Positions 9,452-37,009 of a stretch of DNA of 64,000 bases are shown piece after piece (the first letter of the stretch is position 1; each line of letters opens with the position of its first letter). Position numbers and translations under genes: made by a program. The DNA comes from Epithemia pelagica (taxonomy: Eukaryota; Protista; Bacillariophyta). The stretch spans positions 186,001 through 250,000 of the forward strand of contig OX337228.1 in assembly GCA_946965045.2 (NCBI GenBank), read 5' to 3'. The notes below the pieces were generated by a model, which saw nothing but the letters and a program-made list of their open reading frames with translations, made no database searches and was not told where the DNA came from.

Positions 9452-10639
9452 GTGCCAGCTAGGATGAGCACGCCATTGGAGGCCAAGTCCGACACGAAAC
9501 CAAACATCCCAATCAAGAAGAAGAAGAACGACAACAAGACGGTGTTGGTGGTGAAACCATTCAAAAAGAAGAAGCAACGTTCCCAGTGGAAACCATCGCG
9601 CTTGATGACACGAACGTCTGTCACGCAACAAACCCAACGATTACTCCTCGAGCAACAACAACAACAAGAACAAGAATCCTCCAAAGTGGAAACCACAGAC
9701 TTGTTTGAGAATGACCACAACAACGACGAGACTGACACTGCCGAAAATGCACTGGCATGGTGCGATACCCTTCAAGTCCTTTATTCCTTGCAACAGCAAT
9801 CCTCCACCACCAACAACAACACCAGCCACAACAACGAATCTTGTTTGCCCATTCCCCTCAAAACCAGTGGACAATATATCTACGCCGTCTTGGACTGTCA
9901 ATTGTATGCCTCGGGCTTGCAAGATTCCATTGTCGCACGAGAACTCTCGGAATTGCAAGCGCAAACCGTTGTGATTCCACTGGGACCGCCTCGTACCAAC
10001 CACGGAAGCAGCAGCAACAATTCGGGACCCACCGTGTGGCTCACGAAACAAGACTATGACCGGGCCGTGCGCGATGCCGTCCAAACTCACTTGGCGGTTC
10101 CTAATGTCACAACCACAACACCCCATCCATTGGACGTTTCGTGGATCCACAGTTGTGTGGAATGGTTTTTAGACACGGTCTTGATAAAACACTGTACTGG
10201 AAATATCATTGCGCACGACGACGAATTGAAACAGGCCTGGAAGACACGAACCACAACAACATCATCATCGTCATCACAAGAAGGGCCCAATCACGCAGAC
10301 AAGAAGGAGCCATCCGTAGACGACGTGATTCAGTTCTTGGTACATTTGAATCTTCTCTTACCCTGTAGTTGGAGTCACGAATCCTATCAAGTCTGGTACC
10401 CCACCTGGCCCTTGGTCTTGCAAACCTGGACGCAAACCTCGCAACGACTGGTCACTCTGCTCAAACAATCCTATTACAAGGAAAAGTCGTTGGTGTCGAT
10501 TCAAAAATCTCTGGGTCAACGCAGCCCCATTCCCATCTTACTCTTGCTGCAATACCTGGAAACTCGAGGCATGGTCAAGACAGTCCACAAACCGTCGGGC
10601 CCCTTTATCCAATTGACGGCCACCGGAGCAGGACGGTAA
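9452..10639 (+). CDS. STK19: STK19-like winged-helix protein
   Basis: C-terminal YQVWYPTWPLVLQTW...LVTLLKQSYYKEKSL...LLQYLETRGMVKTVHKPSGPFIQLT parallels the STK19 family C-terminus as I recall it (W-x-x-x-P...KyrEl...G.v....t.sG..lrL). Not database-verified. Confidence 0.65.
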   Translation: MPARMSTPLEAKSDTKPNIPIKKKKNDNKTVLVVKPFKKKKQRSQWKPSRLMTRTSVTQQTQRLLLEQQQQQEQESSKVETTDLFENDHNNDETDTAENALAWCDTLQVLYSLQQQSSTTNNNTSHNNESCLPIPLKTSGQYIYAVLDCQLYASGLQDSIVARELSELQAQTVVIPLGPPRTNHGSSSNNSGPTVWLTKQDYDRAVRDAVQTHLAVPNVTTTTPHPLDVSWIHSCVEWFLDTVLIKHCTGNIIAHDDELKQAWKTRTTTTSSSSSQEGPNHADKKEPSVDDVIQFLVHLNLLLPCSWSHESYQVWYPTWPLVLQTWTQTSQRLVTLLKQSYYKEKSLVSIQKSLGQRSPIPILLLLQYLETRGMVKTVHKPSGPFIQLTATGAGR

Positions 10640-11308
10640 CAACAGATTCTATTTTCCATGCACACTCACGCACGCAGGCACACAAGGATGAGACCGAGAA
10701 GAAACCACTCGTGATGAATTGAGACGACCACCATGTCTGCGAGGAGAATGAAACGAAGACGGTTCCTGCTTGTACTCCTCACACCCACAGTCGTTGCTCT
10801 CTGCGAGTATACGGAGGCGTTGTAGTTTCATGGCCTGGGTGACGGATCCTTGACATATATATGATTGGATGGTCCAGAGATGATGAAACAGACGAGTAGC
10901 AACCATGAGAGTTTCCAGCCTAAGAATCAAAGAGTTGGAATCGTACAGCAGTTTTGAGGGAACGTTGCGCGTTCTGCGAGAAGGTGTCGCTCCGTGTAAG
11001 ATGTTGGGCGTTCATGACAAGAACCATTACATTAATTGTTCCCCTGGCTCTCTGTATCCATGGGAGGAACATCAATGGGTTCCGTCCGATTGTCTCTCCA
11101 TTGGACATTTGGGAGTTTATGAAGTTGTTCGTTCCAGTGGAGGGAACAATCGTAGACCAGGTCCCAGAACGGATATCAGTCGCAGTTATGTGGGTATGGA
11201 TGCCTTAGAATTTGGGGGTTCTTGATGACCGTACGAGAGCTGGAGAGAAAATTTATTTATCCCAAAGAGAGGTCCCAAGTTATATGTGTGTATTGATGCC
11301 TGGATTGC

Positions 11309-12092
11309 TTCAATCGCGTTACCAGAGATTCAGTCTCGTATCACTGTGCTTCCTACGTTCGATAACGTACTCGATGTCCATCGAACGCATCCTTATTATG
11401 GAGCATAAGAATTTCAGTCGAGCAGCGTTTCTTGGGATGCCACAGCTGACATCCGGATATGATTTGAAATTTTGATGGTAACGATGGGAGTTCAGTCGCG
11501 CTCGACGGCATCGTTCTCTGTATTCGGTAATGTAGTCGATGGCCCATCGAATCCGTTCGTATGGATATCGAGAAGTTTGGCCACTCGGATCCCACAACCG
11601 ACAACCGATTTACATGTTTGGTTTCTGCATGGATCGTGGGTGCTTGGAAGTGTGGGCGGACGAATGAATTAGTCCAGTCGCGTTTCCAATTTTGGGGTTC
11701 AGTCTTCAGTCGCGCTCAAATTTTGGGATACATCTATCGATGAATTCAATCGCATTCAATCGCATGGTGTTCTTTTGGTCCCTGTCTACAGTTCACTCCT
11801 TTTGATAAAGAGGGAGCCTCGACAACAACCGACCAAAAGCTTTGTTTCCTTTGAAATTTTGATGAGTTCAATCGCGTTCAAAGTTTGGGGTAGTATATAG
11901 ATTGATGGATTCAATCGCATTCGATGAAATGGTGTCCTTTTGTTTCCTCAAGCATGCCGCTCTATTCCATAATGACATCAATGGCACGAGAATCCGTTCA
12001 TCAGTCGAGTACGAATTGTAAGGTTACTGCCTATTGATGGGTTCAATCGCGTTGAAATTTTTGGGGGGTATGGATTTCAGAGTTGAATCGCG
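11309..12092. repeat. Degenerate repeat cluster, motif TTCARTCGC[GA], about 9 copies
   Basis: Copies at ~11309, 11491, 11673, 11705, 11745, 11755, 11867, 11910, 12042 and 12083 (two are variants). Larger units at 11704-11775 and 11866-11942 resemble each other. Confidence 0.65.
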
Positions 12093-12308
12093 TTGAAATT
12101 ATGGGTGCGGGTGAGGAGGGTTCATTCCCGTTCGATTATTGCGCACATACACCACCCGCGGAAAGATCTTGCGTGATCCGTTGCGACAAAAGGAACAAAA
12201 ACCACAAGAAGCACATAAATAAAAAAGCAAACAAATTTGCTGCGTTCCATAAAACAAAACGAAACGAAAGAGCTACTGGTTGTCGCCAAACACAACCAAA
12301 CCACAACC

Positions 12309-13133
12309 ATGACAAGCGCTCGCGATTGGCTGATTGTATTGTCGGCAGTGACCTCCGTCGTCAAGTCGTTTGTGTCGGTAAACACTTACGAGTACTGGAA
12401 TGTCGTCTTTGCCGTGGGCGAAATGGCCTTGACTGCGGTCGCCTTTGTGATTGTCTTGCTGGATGATGAATTCACCATAGACAATTACGGTCGACAAGAC
12501 TACATGATTTTTCTTGTCATGTTCCTGCAAGGCCTCATGGCAGAATGGATTGATGTGATTGCGACCTTCAACACGGTCCGTCTCTTTAAGGAGCTCCAGG
12601 CCATGCCCGGGAAGGATACCGAGCTGATGAAGAAAGATGCGGGTTGTCAGTATGTAAAAGGTTTGATCTTTGGCCTGCTATTTACCGGATTGCTCCCTCC
12701 CCTTCTGACCTTTTCCAAGGCCGATTGGGATGTGGACTTGTTCGAGCCGGGACCCTTTAGTGATGGTAACAGCGACCGTCTGATAGTGGCCAGTTGGATT
12801 GGCTTTGCGCAATCCTCTTTTGTGGTCATTTTCTACACCTTGTTCCCCACGCTGCTCGGCAAAACAGTAGTGGGAATGTTGCTCAATGCGGCCCTCTATC
12901 CGGCCATGGTCGTCGTGGCGGTTCTCATGTTGATTTCCATTGCTCGTATCAAGAGCACCGCCGAGGCTGGTCATTTCACCTTTTTGTTGTGTATCAACGC
13001 CGTTCAAATGGCGGAAATGTCCGCGGAATATACGCGGCTCAGTGCCCTCCGCGAAGAAGCGGATCGGATGAAACAAATGATGGCGGCGGGAGTGGGTGAT
13101 GAGGGCGATGCACCCAGTTCAGACGAGAAGTAG
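12309..13133 (+). CDS. Multi-pass membrane protein of unknown function (~274 aa)
   Basis: ATG at 12309 in a CAACCATG context; about 6-7 hydrophobic stretches; uninterrupted frame with gene-like codon usage. Confidence 0.7.
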   Translation: MTSARDWLIVLSAVTSVVKSFVSVNTYEYWNVVFAVGEMALTAVAFVIVLLDDEFTIDNYGRQDYMIFLVMFLQGLMAEWIDVIATFNTVRLFKELQAMPGKDTELMKKDAGCQYVKGLIFGLLFTGLLPPLLTFSKADWDVDLFEPGPFSDGNSDRLIVASWIGFAQSSFVVIFYTLFPTLLGKTVVGMLLNAALYPAMVVVAVLMLISIARIKSTAEAGHFTFLLCINAVQMAEMSAEYTRLSALREEADRMKQMMAAGVGDEGDAPSSDEK

Positions 13134-13275
13134 TTCGTTTCTTCGATCATTGGTGAGGCGAGCTGCTCTTGCTACCTAATACCAAGCTAAACGTTATCTC
13201 CTATTCTCATGCCTAATTCCTCATTTACAGCTCCCCAAAACACAATTTTTGTCGTTCTTGCCATTGTATCGGAAT

Positions 13276-14320
13276 CAACCATCCATAAACAAGAAGCAAC
13301 GCTCTTTGCAGTAGAAACCATCGCGCTTGACGACACGAACGGCTGTAACGCAACAAACCCAACGATTGCTTCGCGAGCAGCAGCAACAAGAACAAGAAAC
13401 CTCAAAAGTGGATACCACGGACCTGTTTGAGATTGACCACAACAACGAGACTGCGGAAGATGCCGCGCTAGCATGGTGCGATACCCTCCAGGTCCTGTAT
13501 TCCTTGCAACAGCAATCCTCCACCACCACCAACAGCAGCAGCAATATCAACAACAACGCCCCATTCCCCTCAAAACCAGTGGTCAGTATATCTACGCCGT
13601 CTTGGACTGTCAATTGTATGCCTCGGGCTTGCAAGCGCAAACCATTGTGATTCCACTGGGACCGCCTCGGACCAGCCACGGCAGCAGCAACAACAATTCC
13701 GGCCCCACCGTGTGGCTCACGAAACAAAAGACTATGACCGTGCCGTGCGCGATGCCGTCCAAACTCACGTGGCGGATGCTGTCAAAACCAAATCAACAAC
13801 ACCCCACCAATTGGACGATTCGTGGATCAACGTCGTGGTGGAATGGTTTCTCGACACAGTGTTGATAAAGCACTTTTCTGGAACCAACATTGCGCTCGAC
13901 GACGAATTGAAACAGGCCTGGAAGACACGAACAACAACAACGACATCATCGTCATCACAAGAAGGACCCAATCACGTAGACAAGAGTGTGCCATCTGTGG
14001 ACGATGCGATTCAGTTCTTGGTACATTTGAATCTTCTCTTGCCCTGCAGTTGGAGTCACGAATCCTATCAAGTCTGGTACCCCACCTGGTCGTTGGTGTT
14101 GCAAACGTGGACGCAAACCTCGCAACGACTGGTCACTCTGCTCAAACAATCCTTCTACAAGGAAAAGTCGTTGGTATCGATTCAAAAATCTCTGGGCCAA
14201 CGCAGTCCCATTCCCATCTCGCTCTTGCTGCAATACCTGGAAAAACGAGGCATGGTCAAGACAATCCACAAGCCGTCGGGCCCCTTTGTCCAATTGACGG
14301 CCACCGGAGCAGGACGGTAA
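13276..14320 (+). pseudogene. 5'-truncated, frameshifted duplicate of the STK19-like gene
   Basis: Colinear with 9550-10639 but split over three frames: frameshift near 13555, a 36-nt deletion between TTGCAA repeats near 13630, and a +2 insertion (gaaacaaaagact vs gaaacaagact) near 13726. The first ~35 codons are missing. Confidence 0.8.
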
Positions 14321-15099
14321 CAACAGATACTATTATACACGCACACGCACGCACACACAAGGATGAGACCCAGACCTAGAAACAAGAAAGCGAATGGAAA
14401 CTGTCGCACCCACAGTGGCTGCTCTCGGTGGGTATATATGGATGCGTCGTTGGCGTATTGTTGTTGTTTGTTTGTCATGGCCTTGATGACTCATAATTTC
14501 CATAATGTTTATTTGCCCTGAGATGATGAAACAGACGTGGAGCAACCGTCCTGCGTACGAATAAAAGAATTGGGATTGTAAAGCAGGTTTGTTGATGCGT
14601 TGCGCCCAAGTTCGTTTTGGTGGTATCCCTGTGGGTTCTTCCAGAGTGTCGCTCCGTGTAAGACGTTGGGCGATAGTGGTGAGAACCATTACAGCCATTG
14701 TCCCACGGACGGTCTATATCCATGGAGGGAGCACACATCTATATCTTGGCCAGCCAGGTCCCAAAACCGTCACCTGTCTCAGTTCTGTGGGAAGTATGAA
14801 TGCTTGACAGTTTGATGATGTCAATGGGTTCCGTCAGATTGTCTCTCCATTGGACATTTGGGAGTTAGTGAAGTTCTTCGTTCCAATGGAGGGAACAATG
14901 GTTCCAGAACGGATATAGACGCTTTCGAATTTGGGGGTCTTTCGACGGGTTCAGTACCGTTTTGGGTGACCGTGACGAGAACCCGTACCAGATATCTGGA
15001 AGGAGCCCCAACGAGGTCCCAGTGCCAGTGCGGTGTGTATTGATGCTTGGATTGCGTCAATCGCGTTACTTGTAGAGACTCAGTCGTCTATCACTGTGA
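13276..15099 (+). repeat. Direct segmental duplication of ~9550-11348
   Basis: Similarity continues past the stop codon, e.g. gtgtcgctccgtgtaaga at ~10984 and ~14647, and gtgtattgatgc..ggattgc.tcaatcgcgttac at ~11289 and ~15036. Confidence 0.85.
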
Positions 15100-15339
15100 T
15101 TTTTGGGTGAGGATGAGTCAATCGCGTTCCATGGCATGATTTTTTGTACCCTTTGGTGGTACAGTGGCAAAAGCGCATCCGTTCGCATGGACCATTCGCA
15201 CGTCTGTTGGCCAAGAGCACATACAACCGACACAAATGTGCCTTCTTACAGTATTGATGCTTTGGAATTTCAAAGCCTCAGATTTGAGCCTCTCACAAAA
15301 TTACAATTGATCTCACAAAAAACAAAACGATTGAAAATC

Positions 15340-16014
15340 ATGGCCAAGGTCGACTCTAATACTACTGATACGGAAATGGCTTCCATCACTACCACGGTGA
15401 CCAAAGGGAGAATGGGTGCTGGCGGACGCAAGTCCTTTTGGACCATCAAAATAATCTTGATTGCTTCCATGGCAAGTCTCGTTTCTCTCGGTGTAGCCAG
15501 TGCCTTTTTCTTTTGGGGTCGTCAGGTCGACACGTGTGGTACAGATGATATTGAAATGGACCCACCCGAATCATCTGAATTGAATGCTGATGAGAAGGAA
15601 CATTTGGACTACTGGGTTGAGGAGTTTGTGATGAACAGCACCAACCATGATCATCGCAAGGGTGACCGCATGTTGTTTCGCGACAGCACCCGAAAGAGCT
15701 GTTGGAATTATGGAAATGGCCGATACCTTTGCAAGGACTGGCCCTACACAAGCCGTCAGCGATTCACTACGAAGAGCTGTACGAACCGTTATCATGCCAT
15801 GAACTATGCGCGCTATACATGGGCTCCTCAAAAGGCCCAGGCTCATGAAAACTATGGCGAATCGATTTGGTCCAGGTCCGGATATAAGGGCACGAACTGC
15901 TGGACCAGGACGATCTACACGGGACTGCAAAATGTGCAAGGTCCAAGTTACTACTGTGTCAAGGAGTTCACTGCCACAACCACGACTGAGTTGACCTGTT
16001 GGATCACCTCGTAA
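15340..16014 (+). CDS. Orphan type II membrane protein with Cys/aromatic-rich ectodomain (224 aa)
   Basis: ATG at 15340 (MAKVDSNTTDTEM...), one hydrophobic helix (IILIASMASLVSLGVASAFFFW), then a Cys/Tyr/Trp-rich C-terminus. Two degraded paralogs in the window support a real gene. Confidence 0.7.
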   Translation: MAKVDSNTTDTEMASITTTVTKGRMGAGGRKSFWTIKIILIASMASLVSLGVASAFFFWGRQVDTCGTDDIEMDPPESSELNADEKEHLDYWVEEFVMNSTNHDHRKGDRMLFRDSTRKSCWNYGNGRYLCKDWPYTSRQRFTTKSCTNRYHAMNYARYTWAPQKAQAHENYGESIWSRSGYKGTNCWTRTIYTGLQNVQGPSYYCVKEFTATTTTELTCWITS

Positions 16015-16637
16015 GAATGTTTGGAGGAGGTCCCTTCACGTATTGCAAGCGCGGAGAATGCGTACCAGCAATCTTCTTTTTCCGAGATGCTACGATACGA
16101 ATGGTGGACAAACTCATTGAAAAGGAAACTTGTGTGTTGTGTTGCGTGAAACTTAGGAACGATCGCTACTAACTACCAAAGAAAACCACACTCTCTTCTG
16201 TACAATCTTTATAAAATCTGGAACTTTGGACGAAAATTGCTGGGTTCTACGGAATCGAGGTAAACACGGTTCCATCCGTATTCTGATCACTCTGTTTTGT
16301 GCTGAGGAAAGTTTGGTGTCTCCTATTTACTGTTGTTAATGTTGTTGTTACGAGAGAGTAATCGCACTATTCTGAACAGTGTGAAATACGGAGGACCATA
16401 CACATACCTTCGAGTATGCTAATAATAGGATGATGCTGTGATTGGGAGAGTTGGTCTTGCGCGCGCATCCTTTCGAGAGTCTCGAGGAGTGCGACTTGTC
16501 AGGATGATTCGAATCCAAGGGTTCGAGTCATTCTTGTTGTTGTGGTGGTGGCGGTGGTTGTTGGAACCAAGGGCCCAAGTTTGGGACCGACCCTAATATG
16601 AATTGTCCTGACAATGCTGTTTGGGTACTACCTACCA

Positions 16638-17738
16638 CTACAACAACAACAATAAGCGCGACATGTCAAGGACGACTCCCAGAGTCCAACCCATGGTGGA
16701 TCTCAACAAGGGTGGAAGGGGCCATCGTTGCACTTGCCATCTTCGGTCGTACAAGAGCAAAATTGAAAAGACAATGGTCATTCCCAAGGTACCATGTATC
16801 CGTAAACTACTACGAGTGGTGGTTTTGTGATTGTCGTCGTGGTGTTTGGGAACCAAAAACTGCTGCGGCCCGTCGACCACAATCCATTCCGGACCACCCG
16901 TAGAGGGATACCATGTCAACAAACTGGCCACATAAAAGGCCGCCGCGAGCGTTTGGGGGAGATTCGTGGTGGGGGATGCTCCACAGAGAATCATGGCAAC
17001 AAACAAAAGGTGAGAGTCCAGGGAAGAAGGATTTGGAGCATGGAACGGAGAGTGGTTCTTGTTGTCGAACCACCACCACCAATCCTGCGGATGACTTCGT
17101 CCATCCTGCTGCCGGCGACCATGGGACATACCACAAAGAGGAGCAAGCGTGGAGTGCCAAGAGGAATGTCGATAATTTCCGTGGGATCCAATTGACGAGT
17201 GTGCTAGTAGTAGTAGTAGTAGTAGTAGTAGGAAGAAAAGAATCAGTGTCGTCGTATCATCCGCACAAGTGTGTAGTGTGTAGGAGAAATCCAAAAGAGA
17301 GTAGAGTCGAGAAAATCGTCGTGCGAAAATCATGGTAGTCGTATCCGCAGGAGTGCGCGAAAGTGTGTATGGAAAATCATCACCAACGAGTCGAGATTCG
17401 TCGTGAAAGAATTCCAGTGGAACGAAAGAAAGGAAGAGAGAGAGATAGTCAGATAGCGAAATGAGAACCCGCTCCACAACAACCAGAACAACAACACACG
17501 CAAATCTCCCGAGGATTCTTCTTGTTGTGGTTGTACCTACCATTTCCAAAGCATCTTGGTTCAAGGGATGCAAGACCAGGAGATACAGGCACATCCATAC
17601 GGCAACCAACCCGAGAATACCTCGTCCCATGCGCATTCGGACCGTCGTCGTCGTCACGGGTACTGGTGGGTGACTCTGTGGATTCCGATTTATTGTATGG
17701 ATCGTATTCGTCGTCGTTGTCGGGGTTGTCGTCACCAT
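16638..17738 (-). pseudogene. PIGF: PIG-F/GPI11-like copy 1, with a frameshift in exon 2
   Basis: Exon 1 17738-17541 (...DALEM|GTAGGT); exon 2 from 17203 (HTRQLDPTEIIDIP). A frameshift in a T-run near 17010 switches to the frame encoding AMILCGASP...LLLYDRRWQVQRWPLP. It could be a homopolymer sequencing error. Confidence 0.7.
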
Positions 17739-17866
17739 TGTTGTGTGTGTGTATAGGGGGCGTGGGGTTCTTTTGCCAAACGTTACTTGCGCGTGCGTGC
17801 GTGCGTTGTTTCCTCTCCTTTGGTTCGATTGTTCATTGTCTTGTTTTCCTCTACAGACACTCTCAT

Positions 17867-18602
17867 TCATTTTGGACTTGTTGTGGATTCAGGGGTCCGT
17901 CCTGTTCCAAATGGTATTTTGTTGATTCGAGCCATTATCATCATCATGTTGAGCAAGGCTCCCAGCGTCCAACCGAGGGTGGATCCCAACAAGGTGGGGA
18001 GCGGCCATCGTTGGACTTGCCATCCTCGATCGTACAAGAGCAAAATTTGAAACAAAATCGTCATGCCCAAGGTGGTATGCATCCGAATCCAACTGCTGCG
18101 AGTTCTGAGTTTGGTGAGTTTGTCGGTTGGAGGGGATCGTTGTGGATCATCCACCAGGAGGAAGGGATGCCAATCGGCGGATGATGCACAGGGATCCCAT
18201 GCCAAGAGACTGGCCAGGTAGAGAGCGGCCAAGACGGTTTGACCCAGATTGTGGGTCGGTGAGGCCCCACACAGAATCATGGCAACTGACAAGGTGAGGG
18301 TCACGTAGACCAAGCGTCGTAAGGACTGTATCATGTCTTGGTAGTAGTGATAGTAGTAGCCATTCCTACTATCGTCCAACCGAACCACCAAACCAATATA
18401 CCCAAACAGGACAAGTGCCATGGGAAACACCACCAAGAGGAGCAACCGTGAAGTGGGAAGAGGAATGTCAATAATTTCCGTGGGATCCAATTGACGAGCG
18501 TGCTAGGAGTAGTAGCAGTAGTAGGTGTTGTGGTCGTGGAAGGGTTGAGAGAAGAGAGAGAACGACAAGAAACAAAACAAAACAATTAGCAAGAGAGTCG
18601 TT

Positions 18603-18637
<35 letters not shown>

Positions 18638-18818
18638 GGATGGTACCTACCATTTCCAACGCTTCTTCGTGTAAGGGTTGCAAGACAACGAAATACATCC
18701 AACCCCATACTCCCACCAAGGCAAGGATTCCTGGTCCCATCCAATCCAGTGCAACGGTCGCAGGGTTCCGATGGCCGCTGTTATTGCTGGTGGTCGGTAT
18801 GGTTGTGCTGGTCCCCAT
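17867..18818 (-). CDS. PIGF: PIG-F/GPI11-like GPI-anchor biosynthesis protein, copy 2; exons 18818-18651, 18502-17867
   Basis: ILCGASP and LLLYDRGWQVQRWPLPTLLGSTLGW match the PIG-F pattern (lfGAP; PLDWdrpWQ.WP...G...G). GT/AG sites are at the same positions in all three copies. Confidence 0.75.
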
Positions 18819-19873
18819 ACTTTGCAAAAAAAAGGAAGCAATCACAGCGCGTACGCACAACGTTTGCCCCGTCGGTAGAGAGCGAGGCTAGAATAGACAA
18901 GAAGACACTCCTTCTTTCTGTTGTTGTTTGTTTCGGATTGTGGAACACAGAGAAAACTGGCAGTCCCCGTGTGATGCCGTTGCTCGGCTACCTATTAGGT
19001 TTTTGCTCTTCGTCATTGTACACTTCCTAAGAGCGACCCAGTGGCGTTAAAATCTAGGCGGTCGTGGATAAGTCGCTGTTATCGAAGGAAGGGGTGCCGT
19101 CGTGTATTCCGTGACATTGAAGTAACTCACCCCTCTAGTGCCTCCTCTAGCCGTGTGCCCATTACAGGCCAAAATGGCCCTATGGGAACGTGTTTTCAAC
19201 TAGATAGAACATGGCCAATATTAGACCTACGGCAGCATGTGGATGCCCAAACTTTTTCTTCAAGACATCCTCCATCAACATTGGATACCACATGACACCC
19301 ATATGTGACATATCTAGGTCATATGAGCGCCTCCATTTGGGGGTTGTCGGCATGTGGGCACATGTGGGCACATGGTGGGAACTTAGTGGGGACATTGATT
19401 CGACAGGTCCTATGACAGTCCTATGACCATGATTGGACGTCGTGATGTTAAAGACATTCAATAAATTTGTTTGGCGCCAAAATTTGGGCCATGGTCGACT
19501 TTCGCATCATGTCTCAGGCCAGGTGTCCGTGCCGGCGTTGATTCGGAACCGGAACTCGGAACCCCACGGGGGACAGACAAAATTTTGAAAAAATGGTCAG
19601 TGCCTCAACCTCAACAATCCAACGTCGACACAACAATGGCAATGTATGTTCTTGCTTGGTTTGAACAGTCCCCATCGGGAATGTTGCTTCAGGAGCACAT
19701 GCTGAAGCGCGCTCTTCTGAAAGTTCTTTGTGCTCATGGAATCGAACCTTTTCGTAATGTGGAGCATTACTCAAAGAGTCAATTTCTTGAGCACAAGAAC
19801 AGGTGTGACGACGACGACAACAACGAACTCAACAGCAGCGACGACGAAAAAAGAAGCCAACTTCTAACTACAG

Positions 19874-23794
<3,921 letters not shown>

Positions 23795-23957
23795 AGGATG
23801 CATCGTACGAGCAAGCAATCTGTGGAAATGAGAATACATGATTAGTTAACCAAAATACGTAGTTCTATTATTAGTATCTATGCATCTACGATGTCAATAC
23901 CGTAGCAGTGGACGGGCAGCAGCACCCAATGCAGCGTGGCCGAGTCCTTGTGACCTA

Positions 23958-24121
23958 CAAGTTGCAACTTAGTTGGTACGACAAGTTGCAACTTAGTTGG
24001 TGATTTGCAACTACAAGTTGCAACTTAGTTGGTGCGACAAGTTGCAACTTAGTTGGTGATTCGTAACTTCAGGTTGCAACTTAGTTGGTGATTCGTAACT
24101 ACAGGTTGCAACTTAGTTGGT
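23958..24121. repeat. Minisatellite: 6 copies of CA[AG]GTTGCAACTTAGTTGGT with 4- or 12-nt linkers
   Basis: Copies start at 23958, 23982, 24014, 24038, 24070 and 24102 (periods 24/32/24/32/32). The core AAGTTGCAACTT is a perfect 12-bp palindrome. Confidence 0.95.
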
Positions 24122-24197
24122 GATTCGTACTACATTGCATCTAAAGTTGGATCAATTGATCAAAAAGAAAAATTTACTAAGGTATTATACTCCCGTT

Positions 24198-24896
24198 CTA
24201 TAAGTTTAGTTTCTTCACTGCGATCATGTTGGAATCAAGAAGGTTGTCCTTGTTTTCCATGTGGCCACAAAGTTTCCCGTTGACCAGTTTCAACAGTGTT
24301 GTGGCTCCGACAACACTCATCTTCACAGTGACAACCATAGGTTCCATTGTTATCACTGTGTTAAGTGAGTGGGTTGTCGGGATGGCAATCCTGCTCTTAA
24401 TGACTTTACCACTGTTTGAGCGAAGAATCACACCCTCCAGCTGATTGTTGATGTACTCGAGTGGGATCACCATCTCCGGAACCGAATCGTCCATTTTAGA
24501 ACGATCAAAGAGGCGAATTGAAAATGCGTTTGGGCTCAATTGAGACAAAAAGGTTCGCTGAAGAAGAAGAACACCACGGTCAACAATCAACCGACCATCG
24601 CCTTCATCCTTTTCTCCACCAGCCGACCTGAGATATGCATTCACCCCCGACTCACCAAAGACCGTCACCGTCTCACCCTTGGTGTCGAGCTTCTGCCCAC
24701 CATCACATATAATTGTGAACCCATTTGCAAGTTGCATGGTCTCAAATTTCTTGCTGGTTGTAAGCTGTGCCATTGTTCGGGATGACGGATTTGTTTGAGC
24801 TTTGCAGAAGTGTGAGTGAGGAAGATCTCTGCAACACAGTTGGATTGCCACTTCATTCTTACTTACAATTCTTGCCTGCAATGGGAGAACAAACAA
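24198..24896 (-). CDS. Hypothetical protein inside the transposon (cargo ORF A)
   Basis: 232-aa ORF of normal complexity (possible start MAQLTTSKK), converging on the transposase 3' end; no family recognised. Confidence 0.5.
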   Translation of the reverse strand: MFVLPLQARIVSKNEVAIQLCCRDLPHSHFCKAQTNPSSRTMAQLTTSKKFETMQLANGFTIICDGGQKLDTKGETVTVFGESGVNAYLRSAGGEKDEGDGRLIVDRGVLLLQRTFLSQLSPNAFSIRLFDRSKMDDSVPEMVIPLEYINNQLEGVILRSNSGKVIKSRIAIPTTHSLNTVITMEPMVVTVKMSVVGATTLLKLVNGKLCGHMENKDNLLDSNMIAVKKLNL

Positions 24897-25078
24897 TGTA
24901 TCTATCGAGAAGCACAGTATTGCTGACTATCTATCTGTCGGGACGAGGCACAGTATTGCTGGATCCTATTCTTGTTCTTTGATGGCGGTCGTCTTGAGGT
25001 CGAATTATAGATTTGTGAGCGCACGGACTACTTTTTCGTGCCAAGCGTTCTTGTGGCGCGCCCTATTTACTATTTAAT

Positions 25079-25795
25079 TTGGAGGGCTGGCGTGAATTCG
25101 GAACCTATTGCAACAGACACGACCCGTCAGCCTCATCTTTTTCATGTTTGCAAAGGGAGAAACCAACAACAGCGTCAACAACAACAACGACAAACGACAA
25201 AAGTAACATGTCGACAATCATCAACGGCCGTCGTGTCAGTCTTCGGAACCAACAACGCATCAAAGTGGCCTTGGATGCGGATTCAGCATTGCCACCAAGC
25301 CTTCCCCTCAATCAAGTTCCCAGCTCTGTTTCCAAAGAAAAGTCGTCGCGAAAGATGAGGACAGCAAGCAAGAAAGCATCTACAGCAAAGAATCCCAAGA
25401 TCAAGATGGAAAGGGATGCGGTTGAAGTGAAAGTTGAGGAAGAGCAGAAGGTTCCCATTGTCAAGGAAGAAGCCCATGCCAAGGTTGTGGACAAGAAGAC
25501 GCATGTGTTTGTTCTCTCAGAAAAGAAGGTTGCATCTCCACCTCCTTTTGATACCATGATTGTGCAATTCATGGAGAGTAAGGAACAATACAACAATAAA
25601 AAGTGTTCTCCCGGTACAAATATCCTGGAACTCGAATGCAACAGTTCTGACAAAGACGACACTTTGACCACCAACAGCAACAATCCAATGGGCAAATTTG
25701 GGAACAAGCGCAATTCGTCCATAGGCGTGGACAGCAACCTATCCTTCGAGTTTGCTGAGACCCAGGAACCGTGCATTCACTACAAGTTTGATTAA
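25079..25795 (+). CDS. Lys/Glu-rich hypothetical protein inside the transposon (cargo ORF B)
   Basis: 238-aa ORF (likely ATG at MSTIINGRR) with basic NLS-like runs; it stops just before the right inverted end. Confidence 0.45.
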   Translation: MEGWREFGTYCNRHDPSASSFSCLQREKPTTASTTTTTNDKSNMSTIINGRRVSLRNQQRIKVALDADSALPPSLPLNQVPSSVSKEKSSRKMRTASKKASTAKNPKIKMERDAVEVKVEEEQKVPIVKEEAHAKVVDKKTHVFVLSEKKVASPPPFDTMIVQFMESKEQYNNKKCSPGTNILELECNSSDKDDTLTTNSNNPMGKFGNKRNSSIGVDSNLSFEFAETQEPCIHYKFD

Positions 25796-26224
25796 TCGGA
25801 GATAACTAGTCTAAAAGGAGAGTTTTATATATTGTGCCCACATGTGCCCACTATGTCCCCACAAGTGCCCACCAACTCAACAAGCCTCCGATTGAGGCAC
25901 TCCTATGACTATCATATGTCATAGGTAGTGCAAATGGGGCATCAAATGGTGACAGAGGATGACTTAGAGATTGGGAAGACGCATCAGATCATGGTTGTAG
26001 GGCTAATATTGATCGAGTTCTATCTATTTGAAATATTGTTCCCAACGGTACGTTTTCGTCCGTCATGGGCACACCCGGAGTGGAGGCACTAGTAGCGGGG
26101 GTGTTTTTGAGGTTGTAATTTCGTTGAAACACCCCCATCTCTCTGGTGGAAAAATAACTACCCCCAAGCAGGGGTGAATAGTCGGGTCGCAGATGTGTCG
26201 TGAATTCGAGGTGCAAGTCTTATT

Positions 26225-27167
26225 CACCCCCACGGCGCGAGGGTCCAAAATTGGCGATTTCTCGACTTTGCCACAAACCACAAAAACACACCACACATTC
26301 ACCACGGAGCCAATCTTGAGAGTGTCATAACATCACCCATGAACGTTCAATCCTTCACCCAAGATGACCAACATGTCTCCCTTACCCCACCGGACCATCG
26401 TGAACCTGCGGTTGCCTCCGAAACCCGCCGCAACGAGTCTCTCCATGGTCTGCATACCACCACCAAGAACAACCATACCAACGAGACAGATGACCATCCT
26501 TTCCATCCATCCATGCAAGCTCTCCTTTTGATCCAACCATCCGCAAGTCTCCCTTGCACCTCCACAGACCAAATGAAAGCTTTGCATTCGCTCGAAACCA
26601 TAATCAACCAGACTCGTGCTTGGGGATTGTCTATTTGTTTGCTTATCACCATCTATGTCATAAACTATGGTTGATTGTTGTGTTGTTGTCTTCGTCTTTG
26701 GGGAAGCTAGATGCAACAAACGAGAGGTGATTGCTGTGTGATCTTGGTGCTTCGTATCTTTGAGCTTAATTTGTGTCTTATCATTGTTGTGTGTGGAGAG
26801 CGAAGACCCCAATGTTGTTGTTGCCATGGGATAAAGATAGGCCGATGAAATCAATGAAGGAAGGAGAGAAAGGAAGAGGGGAAACATCGTCGATACCTGA
26901 AAGAAAGGAATAATGGGTGAGAAGAAGGTTGTTTTGGGCGATGCTTCTGTTGCTGCCTACCATGGACCTTGGTAAGCCAATGTCAACCTTTCCGCACCAC
27001 CATCGAGTCATACAGTCCACATGCGCCTTGTTTTGGATGATGGTGGCCTTTGGGCAGTGAAGATGGGCCATGGACGATCGCATCACCTCCAGTGCCGTGG
27101 TGAATGCGCGGAGTGGTTGCGAGGTTTGTGTCAAAGTCGAGAGCGGAAGGGACGCGCCGTGGGGGTG
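26225..27167. mobile_element. Non-autonomous element (943 bp) with inverted ends CACCCCCACGGCGCG...CTCGACTTTG.CACAAACC
   Basis: 26225-26280 and 27121-27167 are inverted homologs: a perfect terminal 15-mer plus an 18/19 internal match. No convincing ORF inside. Confidence 0.75.
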
Positions 27168-27212
27168 AGAAAGAGTTTGCACACCAGAATCGAATCACTA
27201 AACCTCATGACT

Positions 27213-27833
27213 CACCCCCGCTGGGGGGTAGAAAAATAACCTGTAGGCATATCTCATTCCATCCATCGCGATAACAACACGGACCTCGGTGTTGCACCTG
27301 TTGTTGTGCACCTATTTTGACACTTGGTACCTGTCGGGCGAGTCATGGGCCTCTAACCAATAGCGTAGGATACATCTGCATGGCCAAAATATGAAGGTTG
27401 AGTCTATTGTGGAGCTGGTTTACAGGCACCATGCCTCGTGGCACGGTCATACGGAAGCAAGGCCTCACCATTTCGAACGAAGCATCTCAGAGGGATGTAT
27501 GGCTCTTATCATTCATTGTTTCGACACCTAATGGTACACAATATACATAACAGTAGTATCGGAGTGTATCGACAGCAGGACCTCTATTCCCATGTGTTTT
27601 TGGGGCCATCATGGTCTCGTGTCGTGTCATAATGCTGGGCCACTATTTTCATCCTTGCCTAGAGTGACCCTCATGCACTGTGCCGCTCACAATGCACTAC
27701 CATGGTACTAATATGAATTACACGATGGTCGGATGATGATGGGGTGGCCATAGGAGGTCACCAGCAACAACAAAGTTTGATTGTCGTGTTGGAGGAAATG
27801 AAATATGCCGACCCTCTAGAAGAGAAGGGGGTG
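27213..27833. mobile_element. CACCCC...GGGGTG-bounded module (621 bp), related to the 47-bp module at 26130-26176
   Basis: Left end CACCCCCGCTGGGGGGTAG resembles the reverse complement of 26158-26176. The right end read inward (CACCCCCTTCTCT) resembles 26130 CACCCCCATCTCT. Confidence 0.55.
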
Positions 27834-28062
27834 GCTACACGAAATTAAACCGTCTTAGCCACCACCGCTGGGGGCTGGGAGAGCCCCCCACGCACACACA
27901 CACACACCCAATCGCTAGGCATATTCGGCATTTTGGGAGCAAGGAGCCAGAGGCCACACACACAACGCACACTGTGCGTGGTTGTAGTAGATAGACACCA
28001 ACCTTCAGCAAACGTTGGAGGTTGAGCCTTGCGATCCGACTGGCACAAGAACAACTGCCATT

Positions 28063-28431
28063 ATGAGCGAAGCAAGTAGGGCAAAACGCAAGCGAGAAGA
28101 AGATAACCCAGGCGACGGCGAGGTGGAGGAGATGGCAAAGAAACAGAAACTCTATCAAGAGCTTTGGAGCGAGGCACAGACACGGGGGTTGCTCACTAGT
28201 GAGATTCGTGGTGTCCTTGACGACATAAAAGATCTACATTGCAAAATATATACATTGCGCGAGAAAATAGAAACGGATCGAATAAAAGCCGCATATGCAG
28301 TAAAAGATGAGGAACTGAAAGGTTTCTCTCACACATACAACATACAACCGACACACATGTATCTTCTACCTGTATTGATGCTTTGGAATTTCAAAGCCTC
28401 CGTGAGGAGCCACTCACAAAATTACAATTGA
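28063..28431 (+). CDS. Small basic/coiled-coil hypothetical protein
   Basis: MSEASRAKRKREEDNPGDGEVEEMAKKQKLYQELW... has NLS-like clusters; the 3' end is uncertain because it runs into the paralog's upstream region. Confidence 0.35.
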   Translation: MSEASRAKRKREEDNPGDGEVEEMAKKQKLYQELWSEAQTRGLLTSEIRGVLDDIKDLHCKIYTLREKIETDRIKAAYAVKDEELKGFSHTYNIQPTHMYLLPVLMLWNFKASVRSHSQNYN

Positions 28432-28459
28432 TCTCATAACAACAAAAAGATTGAAAATC

Positions 28460-29159
28460 ATGACCAAGGTTGACACTACTGATACGGAAATGGCCCCAAT
28501 CACCACGATGGAGAAAGAGCGCACGGGTGCTGGTGGACGTCAATCCTTTTGGACTGTCAAAACAATCTTGATTGCTTCCGTGGCAAGTCTCTTGTCTCTC
28601 GGTGCAGCCAGTGCCTTTTTCTTTTTGGGTCGTGAGGTCGACACGTGCGGTACCGACAGTATTGAAATGGATCCACCCGAATCAGGCAGATGAAGGCAAG
28701 GAGCATTTGGACAACTGGATTGAGGAGATTCTCGCAAACAGCAACCACCATGATCATGACAAGGGTGACCGCATCTTGTTTACCAGCACTGGCAATCAGG
28801 GCTGTTCGACCTTTGAGAATGGCGCATAATTTTGCCTGGACAATCCGTACGTAAGCCGCCGGCGAGTGTCGGCGGGGAGGAACCGCTGTTTGCCCCGTAG
28901 TCGATTCGATTCCTATGCCCGCGATACGTTTGCTCCTGCCACGAAAGACGCTCATGAGAATTGGGGCGTTTCGGGTTGGGCCAGTCACGGATATCAGGCC
29001 ATTTGTTGGGCCAAGACGATTCGCACGAATCTGGAAAATGTGCAAGGTTCTTCGTCCTCCTGTGTCCGAGAGGCCACTGCCACAGTCACGACTGAGTTGA
29101 GCTGTTATGCCGCCCCTACGAGTGCAGCTCGTGGTTGGGACTCCTACATTCCTCCGTAA
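28460..29159 (+). pseudogene. Disrupted paralog of the 15340 membrane-protein gene
   Basis: MTKVDTTDTEMAP...DTCGTDSIEMDPPES aligns to 15340. There is a frameshifting deletion at ~28686 and an in-frame TAA at 28827-29. Flanks also match (28371-28460 vs 15249-15340; ~29225-29375 vs ~16030-16165). Confidence 0.8.
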
Positions 29160-31690: not shown

Positions 31691-32305
31691 AAGAATGGGA
31701 CGCGACCATGACAACAAAAGGACACTACCCCGCACACCCATGCTCTCATTGGATTGGAGCCCTTTGGCGATTTGGTGTTACTCGGATTCGGTCCTTCTGG
31801 CGATTGCTGTTGCTTCGGCAACGGTTCCTCTCTCGATGAAACACGACAATTTTTTCTCCGGACTATTTCTGTCGGAGAGCAATCATTCCTGCCACAGAAA
31901 AACGGGTGGGATCGCTTGGTGTGTTGGGAACACACACGAGAGAAGAGTGTGAATGGAACCAAACACACAGTTAGTCAACATCAAGAATGAGTCTTGTTGT
32001 GGAAACAGCTCATTTTTTGGAATCCCGAGAAGAAGAGAGTTGGAACAAAACGAGATACGTTTCGCATGGGTGAGATAAACTTCTAGAACGCCATCATTTT
32101 AAAACAGATAAAGGAATGGTTGGCTCAACTACATACAAAACATGGATAGAAGACACCGTGATTCCAACTAAGGATCCTAAAACTAAACTGTCGTAGGTAT
32201 GCGTTTGTACGAATGGTGTGTGTGTGTTTGCTTCCTCTACTATACTACCACCACCAGGGGTGTTGTCGGTATCACGAGGACAACGACGACAAGACGTATC
32301 AGTCC

Positions 32306-34715
32306 TTACTTCTTGTCGCCATCGTCCTTCTTCTTGTCGTCGTCTTCCTTCTTTTCTTCAAAGTCGGCATCGACCGTGCTATCATCCTTCTTTTTGTCTT
32401 CTCCTCCTTCGGGAGGTGCGTCACCGTCTTGTTGTTGATTTTGTTGTTCCTGTTGTTGTTGTCCATAAATGGCTTGTCCAATCTTTTGTGCCGCTTCATC
32501 CAAGGCTTGTTTCTTGGCTTGCAATTCGTCCAAGGTGGCTTCGGTATTGTCCTTGACGGTTCGGGCTTCGGTCACGGCCGTTTCAATCGCCGTCTTGATC
32601 TCGTCATCCAACTTGTCGGCATTGTCCTTGACGGATTTTTCCGTACTGTAAATAAGATTGTCAATGTCATTGCGGGCTTCAATAATTTGACGACGTTGGG
32701 CATCGGCTTCGGCATTGGCTTCGGCATCGCGGACCATTTGTTCAATGTCATCTTCGGACAAACCGCCACTGGACTTGATGACAATGTTTTGTTCCTTACC
32801 GGTACCCTTGTCTTTGGCACTAACATTGAGAATGCCATCGGCATCAATGTCAAAGGAGACTTCAATTTGCGGGGTTCCCCGCGGTGCAGGCGGAATACCC
32901 ACCAAATCAAATTGTCCAAGCAACTTGTTGTCGGCCGCCATGTCACGTTCGCCTTGCATAACCTTGATTTGGACTTGGGGTTGATTGTCGGCCGCCGTCG
33001 AAAAGGTTTGTTGTTTCTTGGTGGGAATGGTGGTATTGCGGGGAATGAGTTTGGTCATGACACCACCCAAGGTTTCAATGCCCAAGGAAAGGGGCGTGAC
33101 ATCGAGCAACAAGATATCCTTGACATCGCCCTTGAGGACACCGCCTTGAATGGCGGCTCCCATGGCCACCACTTCATCGGGATTGACCCCACGCGAGGGT
33201 TTCTTGCCAAAAAACTTTTCCACCGTTTGTTGCACCAAGGGCATGCGGGTCATTCCACCCACCAAAATCACCTCGTGCAAATCACTCTTGCTCACATCGG
33301 CATCCTTCATGCAATTCTGTTCAAAGAGAATTCCAAAAGTACACACACACACACAAGAGTTTTTGTTGGGTTGAGATTCCGCCAGCAGTCACAAGTTTTC
33401 TTCTCCCCTGGTTCGCTCCGACGACGATTCACCGATTCACACACACATCATACAAACGCACAAACGTACCTTGCAGGGATCAATGGTTCGATCAATGAGT
33501 TTTTGCACCATTTGTTCAAATTGGGCCCGCGAGACTTTGGCATTCATGTGTTTGGGACCACTGGCATCGGCCGTAATAAAGGGCAAACTGACATCGGTTT
33601 GGGCCAAACCGTCCAATTCGCGCTTGGCCTTTTCAGCCGCTTCCCGCAACCGTTGCATGGCCAACTTGTCCCCACTCAAATCGAGACCGGATTCTTTTTT
33701 GAAATCGCCCAGCAAGTATTCCAACAATTCCTCGTCAAAATCTTCGCCGCCCAACATGGTATCGCCATTGGTGGCCTTGACTTCAAAGACGCCGCCTTGA
33801 ATTTCCAACACCGAGACATCAAAGGTGCCACCGCCCAAATCAAAGACGACAATGGTCTTGCCATCGGCCTTGTCCAATCCGTACGCGAGCGACGCCGCCG
33901 TGGGTTCATTGATAATGCGCAAAACATCCAAACCGGCAATTTTGCCCGCATCCTTGGTCGCTTGACGTTGCGAATCGTTAAAATAGGCCGGCACCGTCAC
34001 GACCGCCTTGCCGACGGTTCGTCCCAAGAAGGTTTCGGCCGTTTCCTTCATTTTGGTCAAGACCATGCTCCCAATTTGACTGGGACTGTACTTTTCGCCC
34101 CGCACTTGGACCCAGGCATCGTCGTTATTGTCCGACTTGCAAATTTCGTACGGTACCAAATTGGCAATATTCTTGACTTCGGGATCGGCAAAGCGACGGC
34201 CAATCAAACGCTTGACGGCATAGAGGGTATTTTCTGGATTGGTCACGGCCTGACGACGGGCCGCCATGCCCACCAGTCGTTCGCCGCCTTCGACAAAGCC
34301 CACCACGGACGGTGTCGTACGAGCACCTTCCGAGTTTTCAATCACGCGCGGATTGCGGCCTTCCTATGAGTATGTATTAGTAGTAGAAGGGGACAAGGAC
34401 AACAACACGATGAACAGCACACACAAAAAAGACACTTGCGTGTGAGACCACCACCCACTCGATCCAATCCAATCAAATCCAATCACAACCAACCACACTA
34501 CAATCCAACACAATACAAAGCAAGCAACGTACCATGATGGCGACACACGAGTTGGTCGTTCCCAAATCAATGCCAATCACATCTTCGGTCGGTGCCGACG
34601 ACGATTGAAATCTCAGGGCGCCCAACGGGGCCGGAGTTTGTGAAACGGACAGTCGAGAGGACGACGCCAAGAAGCGTCGTCCCAATGTTTTGGAAGCAGT
34701 AGTCAGGGGCAACAT
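32306..34715 (-). CDS. HSP70: Mitochondrial HSP70 (DnaK-type); exons 34715-34533, 34363-33470, 33316-32306 (695 aa)
   Basis: [43 protein letters not shown] and [16 protein letters not shown] signatures; Arg/Ser-rich presequence ending LRFQSS. Both introns are GTACGT..AG, phase 0. Confidence 0.97.
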
Positions 34716-35495
34716 GATGATAGAGTTCTTGTTGTTTTGAGAGACTTGAGAGTCGTAGTAGCTTGCTCAACGCCAAAAAGAATCCAGAAAATACGATTCG
34801 ACAGAGTGGCGATAGAGATCCACGAAAAAGAGTCGATTGTCAATCCGAGAAGGATGAATCAATAGAAAGGATGGTGTGGACTCGTCGAAAACCCACGAAG
34901 GAAATGGAATCCGACACTATAGACAGACAGAGATGGCGAAAGGGAGATCTCTTAGAATGGAATGGACTTTTGGTTTCGGGTGAACGTCTGGAAAAGAAAG
35001 GATGGCAATGGATCTTCTCTTTCGACTGGATTTTTTTTTGTGGTCTGGTGCTTCCAAAGGCGAGGGAGGAAGCATGACGGACGACGGACCATCTGCGGAA
35101 CCGAACCAGATGACGTGTAGTACAACCTAACGTTTCATGACCTCTTTTTTACAGTTTCCTTCATATTCAATGGTCTTTCGTACATGTCGATAGTACACGT
35201 CTGACGTCACGGAAAATACACGGGGGACCTCCCGTGTAAACGCGACTTGGAAATGACCCATTAGATTCGAACGCCAATGGGTCGCGTTAGAGAAGAGTGG
35301 ACAATGTCGCATAGCAAAATCCGAGGAGCGTTCTCCCAACAAACACACTCTTACTCCGAAACGAGAAAAAACACACACACACAGAAACAAACGAGGAGAG
35401 TCCCGTTCTCCTCTCGAACCTCTCTACGGACGCGCCAAACGTTGTGCGTGCGCGGTGATTGCTGCATTCTTCCATGGACCATAGTATAGTACGGT

Positions 35496-36435
35496 ATGGT
35501 GACAGCCACAACACCAACCAGCAGCCGCCATCGGAAGCCTACGACGTTCGCAATGCGGAGGATGGGGCGAGGAATCCTCGCCATGGTGGCAGTGTGGAAT
35601 TGGATGTATTTGATTGTCTTGCAACCCTTGAAGGAAGAAGCATTGGAAATGGTATGTCATTTCCAAAAGAACACCACCAAAGATTCGCTCGCTCCGTGCT
35701 GGGCCTCATTTCTTGGTGTTGGTTTCTCTCTCTCTCTCTCTCTTTTTTTTTCTCTCTCTCGAAACACGCTTTGACACAACCACCATTCACTTCTTGACAA
35801 CAACAACAACAACAACCACAAACTACTGCTCCAACTACTACTACTACAACACCTAGCACACTCGTCAATTGGATCCCACCGAAATTATTGACATTCCTCT
35901 TTCGACTCCACGGTTGCTCCTCTTGGTCGTTCCCATACTCCTTCCCTTGCTGGTGGAGGCTGTTGTTGTTGGCAATGGCGGCAATCACGGGATCACCACT
36001 CTGTCACGCTTGGTCCAGTTGACCCTCACTCTGTTTGCTGCCATGATTCTGTGTGGGGCCTCACCGACCCACACTCTGGGTCCAACGGCTTTGGCCGCTC
36101 TTTACCTGGCCTGTTTGCTGGGATGGGATCCTCGTGTGGGATCGGGGGACTGGCATCCTCTCCTCCTCCTGGTGGATGATCCACGACGACGACGGGAGGT
36201 GCCCCACCACCACCACCACCAGGATGACCACAACCACAAGGCCACACACACGACAAGCAGCAGCAGTCTGGTGCGGATGCAGGCCACCTTGGGCATGACC
36301 ATTGTGTTTCAAATTTTGCTCTTGTACGATCGAGGATGGCAAGTCCAACGATGGCCGCTTCCAACCTTGTTGGGATCGACCATTGGTTGGACTCTGGGAG
36401 TCGTCCTCGATATGATCTTGTCATTCCTCGAGTAG
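35496..36435 (+). CDS. PIGF: PIG-F/GPI11-like copy 3 (intact); exons 35496-35651, 35857-36435
   Basis: Exon 1 ...LQPLKEEALEM|GTATGT; acceptor CTAG|CAC ACT CGT CAA TTG GAT; same PIG-F motifs as the other copies. Confidence 0.8.
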
Positions 36436-37009
36436 TAGTAGTAGTAACACTACCCAAACAGGACAATCCACAGTCCCCAAGTTGACCGTGGTTCCAACAA
36501 CCTCAACAACCAGAATGACACGACAAACCCATGGATTCGAATCCTCCAGACAGTCGCACTCGAGACGCTCGCATCATTAGGTATATATGCATGGTCCTCC
36601 GTCTTTTGACACGGTTCCGAATCGTCCACGTCCGGTACTTTCACAACAACAACAACAACAACAAGACACCAAACTCTTCTCAGCACCAAACAACGTGACC
36701 GGAATACGGATGGAACCGGGTTTTGCTAGATTCCGTAGAAAGATGCAATGTTCGTCCCAGGTTCCAGAATCTATAAACTATTGTAAACAAGAGAGAGAGT
36801 GTGACCTTCTTTGGTGGTAGTTGCAGGACAACATTGTTGGGTGAGCTACTACCGACTTGCGCGCGTCCTATTATGAGCCTGGCCTTGTGTGGTTTGGTGG
36901 GAACGAGAATTCCCAGTTCGTCTCTCCCTTTTGTGGTAGGCCATTATATTTCATCGCCAAACTACTAAACCACAATGCGACAACCATTCGCGGCAGTCGT
37001 CGGGGCGTC

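Follow-up and report, generated by a model that had tools for sequence, protein, structure and literature searches.

In our analysis, an array of CACCCC- and GGGGTG-bounded segments in Epithemia pelagica is best read, with a probability of about 90%, as three nested cut-and-paste transposons (element A, element B and a piggyBac-like transposon; Table 1), the hairpins between the segments belonging to Academ-type ends. The locus itself, which lies in a window of 64,000 nucleotides of contig OX337228.1 analyzed here as a whole, is ordinary in that transposons are nested in transposons. The AcademH type of element is already known, and what is apparently undescribed is the hairpin in its ends: in the literature searched, which did not include the AcademH-defining paper, no three-box hairpin with a covarying stem had been described for Academ ends.

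Table 1. Positions of the nested elements and their parts in the window; L008 is the locus that carries the autonomous partner of element B
Feature	Position	Strand	Basis or remark
Element A, high-copy MITE, ~714 bp without inserts	19128-27877		
A left outer tip, severed by the piggyBac-like transposon	19128-19138	+	Aligns to the intact A terminus, L008 at 17870
A left inverted repeat, remainder, with hairpin J1 (26098-26135)	26093-26158	+	82% identical to L008 17877-17942
A body and right end, non-coding, high copy	27241-27877	+	27243-27402 81% identical to the L008 copy
A right end: hairpin J4 (27828-27865), degenerate terminus (27860-27877)	27828-27877	-	
Element B, 1072 bp, non-autonomous, internally deleted, AcademH-type	26159-27230	+	Termini TACCCCC...GGGGGGTA
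B left 10-bp target-site duplication, GAAAAATAAC	26149-26158	+	Directly before 26159
B right 10-bp target-site duplication, GAAAAATAAC	27231-27240	+	Directly after 27230
B left end: terminal near-palindrome (26159-26176) overlapping hairpin J2 (26171-26230)	26159-26230	+	
B right end: hairpin J3 (27162-27218), terminal near-palindrome (27213-27230)	27162-27230	-	
RecQ-like helicase gene, 5' remnant, with short ORF 26339-26674	26216-26641	+	tblastn of P0048
piggyBac-like transposon	19139-26088	+	Termini TGCCTC...GAGGCA; homologous loci
CTAG duplication of the piggyBac-like transposon	19135-19138 and 26089-26092		Homologous loci

Nesting of the three elements

The arrangement GGGGTG-N20..50-CACCCC occurs four times in the window, where 0.12 occurrences would be expected (0 of 100 shuffles), and the matches are J1, J2, J3 and a site at 19091-19133 (J0), while the core of J4 is a variant, CACCAC. 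The geometry given in the preliminary description was reproduced throughout, namely the coordinates, the three modules M1, M2 and M3 of 47, 943 and 621 bp, the spacers of 26, 48, 45 and 26 bp, and the inner complementarity of J1 (TTT/AAA), J2 (AATA/TATT), J3 (AG/CT) and J4 (GCTA/TAGC), and self-comparison of the window recovered the inverted homology of J1 with J4 and of J2 with J3. J1 to J4 form a stem on both strands, with z scores of -1.5 to -4.6 against shuffles, and a search for tRNAs and Rfam RNAs returned nothing relevant. The weaker junction proposed at J0 carries the motif, but it has no stem extension, folds no better than shuffled sequence (z 0.17) and is missed by both end models; undetected by nhmmer and the covariance model, it was rejected as a member of the hairpin family.

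When the piggyBac-like transposon is excised in silico, the remaining region is mirror-symmetric, because one element with two inverted ends sits inside another. J1 and J4 are the subterminal hairpins of the two ends of A, and J2 and J3 are those of B. The three segments are not modules in their own right: M1 consists of the left end of A plus a tip of B, M2 is the interior of B, and M3 is a tip of B followed by the body of A.

Relatives of the piggyBac-like transposon were sought with one exon-level piece (ORF 22313-23794) of its spliced transposase, for which close relatives exist, some of them carrying PF13843. Five homologous loci from one ENA assembly (L001 to L005) align to the window from about 19133 to 26093, and wherever an end could be read, TGCCTC is preceded by CTAG and the DNA beyond is unrelated (no right end was located for L002), which places the transposon at 19139-26088 with CTAG duplicated. 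Since it inserted at a CTAG within the left tip of A, CACCCC and GGGGTG are not piggyBac ends, and the copies of these motifs at 19128 and 26098 are DNA flanking the transposon. The 7-kb transposon had been described as bounded by CACCCC and GGGGTG; its homologues instead end at CTAG|TGCCTC, inside the motif. Clustering of junctions at piggyBac-like ends was likewise not seen, as none of the five homologous loci has a junction-like hairpin at its ends. The piggyBac-like transposon is a later insertion, unrelated to the hairpins. Downstream of its transposase lie two additional ORFs, one on the minus strand (24198-24896) and one on the plus strand (25079-25795), with counterparts in the homologous loci, and the transposon also contains a 24-nt tandem array at about 23955-24130.

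Element B is delimited by its other copies: in public contigs over 25700-28300, their match to the window breaks off exactly at 26159 and at 27230. Compared with the ends of the element at L008 9967-17739, B is 88% identical over its first 453 nt and 93% over its last 168 nt, the right ends of the two being 98.6% identical over 148 nt, and a tblastn search aligned residues 9-159 of the helicase P0048 with its helicase remnant at 70% identity (E 2e-55). These matching ends, the helicase remnant, the 10-bp duplication and a partner with a helicase and a DDE transposase identify B as a non-autonomous AcademH-type element. Whereas the preliminary description had held that the repeats at this locus are not an ordinary target-site duplication, an exact 10-bp repeat, GAAAAATAAC, flanks B. 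In public contigs, a joint from 26158 to 27245 corresponds to a B-free form of A, which had a depth of 1319 in one run and was seen in a biofilm metagenome as well, and since these empty sites come from contigs they most likely represent other genomic copies and do not demonstrate that this locus is polymorphic. About 450 nt in the middle of B (26612-27063) have no match to L008, yet occur in several copies in public contigs, and might be captured DNA or derive from a sister family.

Cut-and-paste mobilisation acts in trans on non-autonomous copies, and internal deletion gives rise to short derivatives. Public contigs contain at least eight different, very short forms of B in which 26201-26216 is joined to 27174-27194 and little beyond the hairpin ends is retained; such scattered joints of J2 to J3 fit an origin by internal deletion. 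Two other assignments were rejected at this locus. A hAT element with an 8-bp duplication, AAAAATAA, and CTACCCCC ends disagrees with the copies, which diverge exactly at 26159 and 27230, and with the partners, which give 10 bp, and a Crypton or other tyrosine-recombinase element is ruled out by the 10-bp duplication and the DDE partner.

Element A is older than its inserts and received B in its left end and the piggyBac-like transposon in its left tip. The part of its left end adjoining B is an inverted homologue of 27821-27869, and its summed contig depth, which runs from thousands up to tens of thousands where single-copy sequence has about 300, falls after 27874. A second copy of A, at 17870 of L008, has an intact tip, TACCCCCTAGCGGGGGTG, whose CTAG is the landing point of the piggyBac-like transposon in the window, and a terminal 18-mer and the inner box are common to both copies. 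No target duplication of A was found at the window locus, where both tips are altered, the L008 copy being interrupted, and there was no autonomous partner of A among five elements compared. The grammar of its ends, shared with the other elements, suggests that A too may be of the AcademH type.

Several further details of A were recorded. Its left tip (19128-19138 plus 26093-26096) exceeds the intact L008 tip by 4 nt, and the extra nucleotides are perhaps the footprint of an earlier visit at the same CTAG. Beside the right duplication of B (27241-27243), about 11 nt of A are absent relative to the L008 copy and public contigs. In L008 (17739-17870), the copy of A begins 130 nt past the end of B's autonomous partner, while in the window B lies within A, and these two co-occurrences may reflect clustering or local hopping. 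A perfect 7-bp GC-rich hairpin at 27871-27889, followed by a CA run, overlaps the degenerate right tip of A.

Elsewhere in the window, gene-sized blocks are duplicated at 70-90% identity in direct and inverted orientation (16208-18780 with 35420-36777, 15219-15573 with 28340-28684, and 9946-10407 with 13622-14088). At 32306-34345, a plus-strand ORF (32213-34369) matches the antisense family NAD-GH; the real gene there is probably glutamate dehydrogenase on the minus strand.

A covarying hairpin in Academ-type ends

All 16 Academ-type ends share one layout, consisting of a tip box (TACCCCC), a 4-nt loop, an inverted box (GGGGGTG), a spacer of 26-52 nt and an inner box (CACCCCC), in which the middle box can pair alternatively with the tip box or with the inner box. 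The junctions described earlier correspond to the pair of middle and inner boxes. These hairpins lie inside the terminal inverted repeats, 12-18 nt from the tip, and they also occur in elements that stand alone as single insertions, each flanked by its own 10-bp target duplication.

Over nine stem pairs in the 16 ends, 90.5% of the positions were paired and 12 double changes were observed, compared with 29-54% paired in slid controls; none of 500 shuffles reached these values, and the shuffle counts overstate significance because the ends are interrelated and come mostly from one assembly. Conservation of the hairpin and covariation of its stem above shuffled controls, as anticipated in the preliminary description, thus hold. 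Relative to the consensus, there were 12 Watson-Crick doubles, 2 other doubles and 11 singles, where 4.7 doubles would be expected under independent arms. About 10 of the 12 remain when changes shared within family A are counted once (p about 5e-4, a figure made optimistic by the same relatedness). The 3-5 bases beside the boxes covary within each end, and own arms form 3.19 of 4 pairs compared with 2.10 for foreign arms. A cleaner control, exchanging the left and right arms within an element, gave 7 (own) versus 2 (swapped) for A, 8 versus 4 for L012 and 6 versus 4 for B, with no difference between own and swapped arms in three of the six elements. In a distant element from the JGI metagenomes, whose helicase is 37% identical, the core itself is altered and an 11-bp stem is kept. 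The stability of the hairpins is moderate (-6 to -14 kcal/mol), and their loops are barely above shuffles in structure (mean z of -1.4). Since covariation differs between two ends that are served by one transposase, we infer that the two arms of the hairpin quite probably pair physically as single-stranded DNA at some stage.

We would give roughly even odds to a reading with the same nesting in which the hairpin is functionless: the boxes would be double-stranded DNA sites for a protein, and the covariation would be a side effect of template switches involving neighboring inverted repeats. Template switching can produce multibase compensatory changes in a single event (PMC8794818), and the double changes in our ends are often adjacent; moreover, the spacer lengths lean to 26, 36-39 and 45-49 nt, which is at most suggestive of helical-turn phasing (p 0.06-0.11), the core has a C-A mismatch on the top strand in 4 of 16 ends, and the G run is interrupted in two families. 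These points are countered by the persistence of the stem across 37% to 60% helicase identity, including a core change in L013 (GGGGGTC/GACCCCC), by the single changes, most of which lie at the stem's open end, the pattern that selected pairing would give, and by the fact that the C-A mismatch reads as a G-T wobble on the opposite strand. A hairpin needed for transposition and its upkeep by template switching can both hold.

Most Academ ends in L006 to L012 also contain GTGAGT, a 5' splice-site consensus, and owing to the inverted boxes they do so on both strands, which may affect host transcripts.

The autonomous partner and a possible role for folded ends

A search of JGI metagenomes with the end pattern of B gave one match, with a DEAD/Helicase_C gene about 140 nt downstream of it, and homologues of this gene led to loci L007 to L014. 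One of them, L008, contains a 7773-bp element (9967-17739) whose ends carry J2 and J3, and terminal inverted repeats are present in both B and this partner. Exact 10-bp duplications flank B and the elements of L007, L008, L009, L010 and L012, that is, all elements with both ends. The RecQ-like helicase P0048 matches Pfam Helicase_C, with DEAD below the cut-off. A second ORF, broken in L008 and present as a single ORF of about 1500 aa in L007 and L010, matches DUF6589, and its Atlas neighbors are DUF6589 clusters from molluscs and basidiomycetes. No relatives were found in viral and prokaryotic collections.

The structure of this second protein was modeled for its L007 counterpart, which shares 61% identity with the L008 piece, using 76 relatives and reaching a pLDDT of 93.6, compared with 45 for a model from 8 sequences only. 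In structural comparison the best match was P-element transposase (Z 9.1, rmsd 5.2, 279 aligned), a score that does not establish a common cleavage pattern, and further matches were integrases, Hermes, Tn5 and RAG1; Foldseek with the model and a PDB sequence search gave no match. On the strength of the model, the partner ORF is a predicted transposase of the DDE/RNase H fold. AcademH elements are described as encoding a helicase and creating 9-10-bp duplications (PMC10045372; PMC10799480).

The long imperfect inverted ends and the 10-bp duplication would also suit a reading of A and B as foldback elements of the Mutator-like (MULE) group, in place of Academ. MULE foldback elements have 9-11-bp duplications. 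We consider this assignment very unlikely, as the partner of B codes for a RecQ-like helicase together with a DUF6589 protein, no MULE Pfam domain was found in the ORFs of L007, L008 and L010, and the ends start with TA and not with G; the identity of B is settled, and A has no direct protein link.

Within the nested Academ-type reading, we speculate that the boxes could be recognition sites for the DDE transposase, which would mobilise A and B in trans, the least certain step of the scheme. By analogy with the P element, the RecQ-like helicase might load on a 3' overhang and unwind the element end, whereupon the arms could pair on the unwound ends and template switching could copy changes from arm to arm. 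That the hairpin is required for transposition is possible and, in our judgment, somewhat doubtful. Still more tentatively, the ends of AcademH may be structure-encoded, such that, once the end is cleaved or the helicase has loaded, the helicase-unwound strand switches between the tip hairpin and the covarying subterminal hairpin, the latter being read by the transposase or the helicase. If true, AcademH would be a cut-and-paste transposon of eukaryotes whose ends are recognised as folded single strands, and this would explain the helicase of AcademH, for which we know of no established role. The covarying hairpin with its natural compensatory variants, the intact autonomous partners and the 1-kb mini-elements make the role of the helicase testable with simple mutants.

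Relation to known systems

The preliminary description had likened the junctions to integron attC sites, as sites of recombination or landing at which modules of the piggyBac family would stack or invert, and although the stems do covary and public contigs join part of J2 to part of J3 without M2, we regard such an array as extremely improbable, because the hairpins lie within AcademH-type terminal inverted repeats in a nested geometry, CACCCC and GGGGTG are not piggyBac ends and five homologous piggyBacs lack such junctions, lone elements flanked by 10-bp duplications carry the same hairpins at their two ends, the joints without M2 fall at eight or more different breakpoints within the spacers, like deletion derivatives and with no single crossover point, and the mobilising protein has a predicted DDE fold and not a tyrosine-recombinase fold. 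The hairpins resemble attC in having a variable loop and a stem maintained by covariation; they differ from it in that a target duplication is present, with no tyrosine integrase, cassette array or fixed crossover, and no conserved extrahelical bases were seen in them. Nested elements with palindromic ends can thus pass for integron arrays. The locus also resembles nested MITEs and other transposon-in-transposon insertions, where the insertion of one inverted-repeat element inside another gives a mirror stack of ends, the difference being that A and B carry one common end motif and so mimic a regular cassette array.

The 7-kb element is piggyBac-like and has a 4-bp palindromic duplication as in that superfamily, but uses CTAG, not TTAA. 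The combination of a superfamily-2 helicase and a transposase with inverted ends and a 9-10-bp target duplication agrees with AcademH, and B is an ordinary non-autonomous derivative; the host here is a diatom, whereas the title of Kojima 2020 (Mob DNA 11:15) on AcademH reportedly lists animals and fungi. The Drosophila P element provides the best structural match to the modeled transposase core and likewise has a long target duplication (8 bp), but it has no helicase. Its transposase leaves a 17-nt 3' overhang (PMC7776569), a length that invites comparison, purely as an analogy, with the 18-nt terminal near-palindrome of the elements described here.
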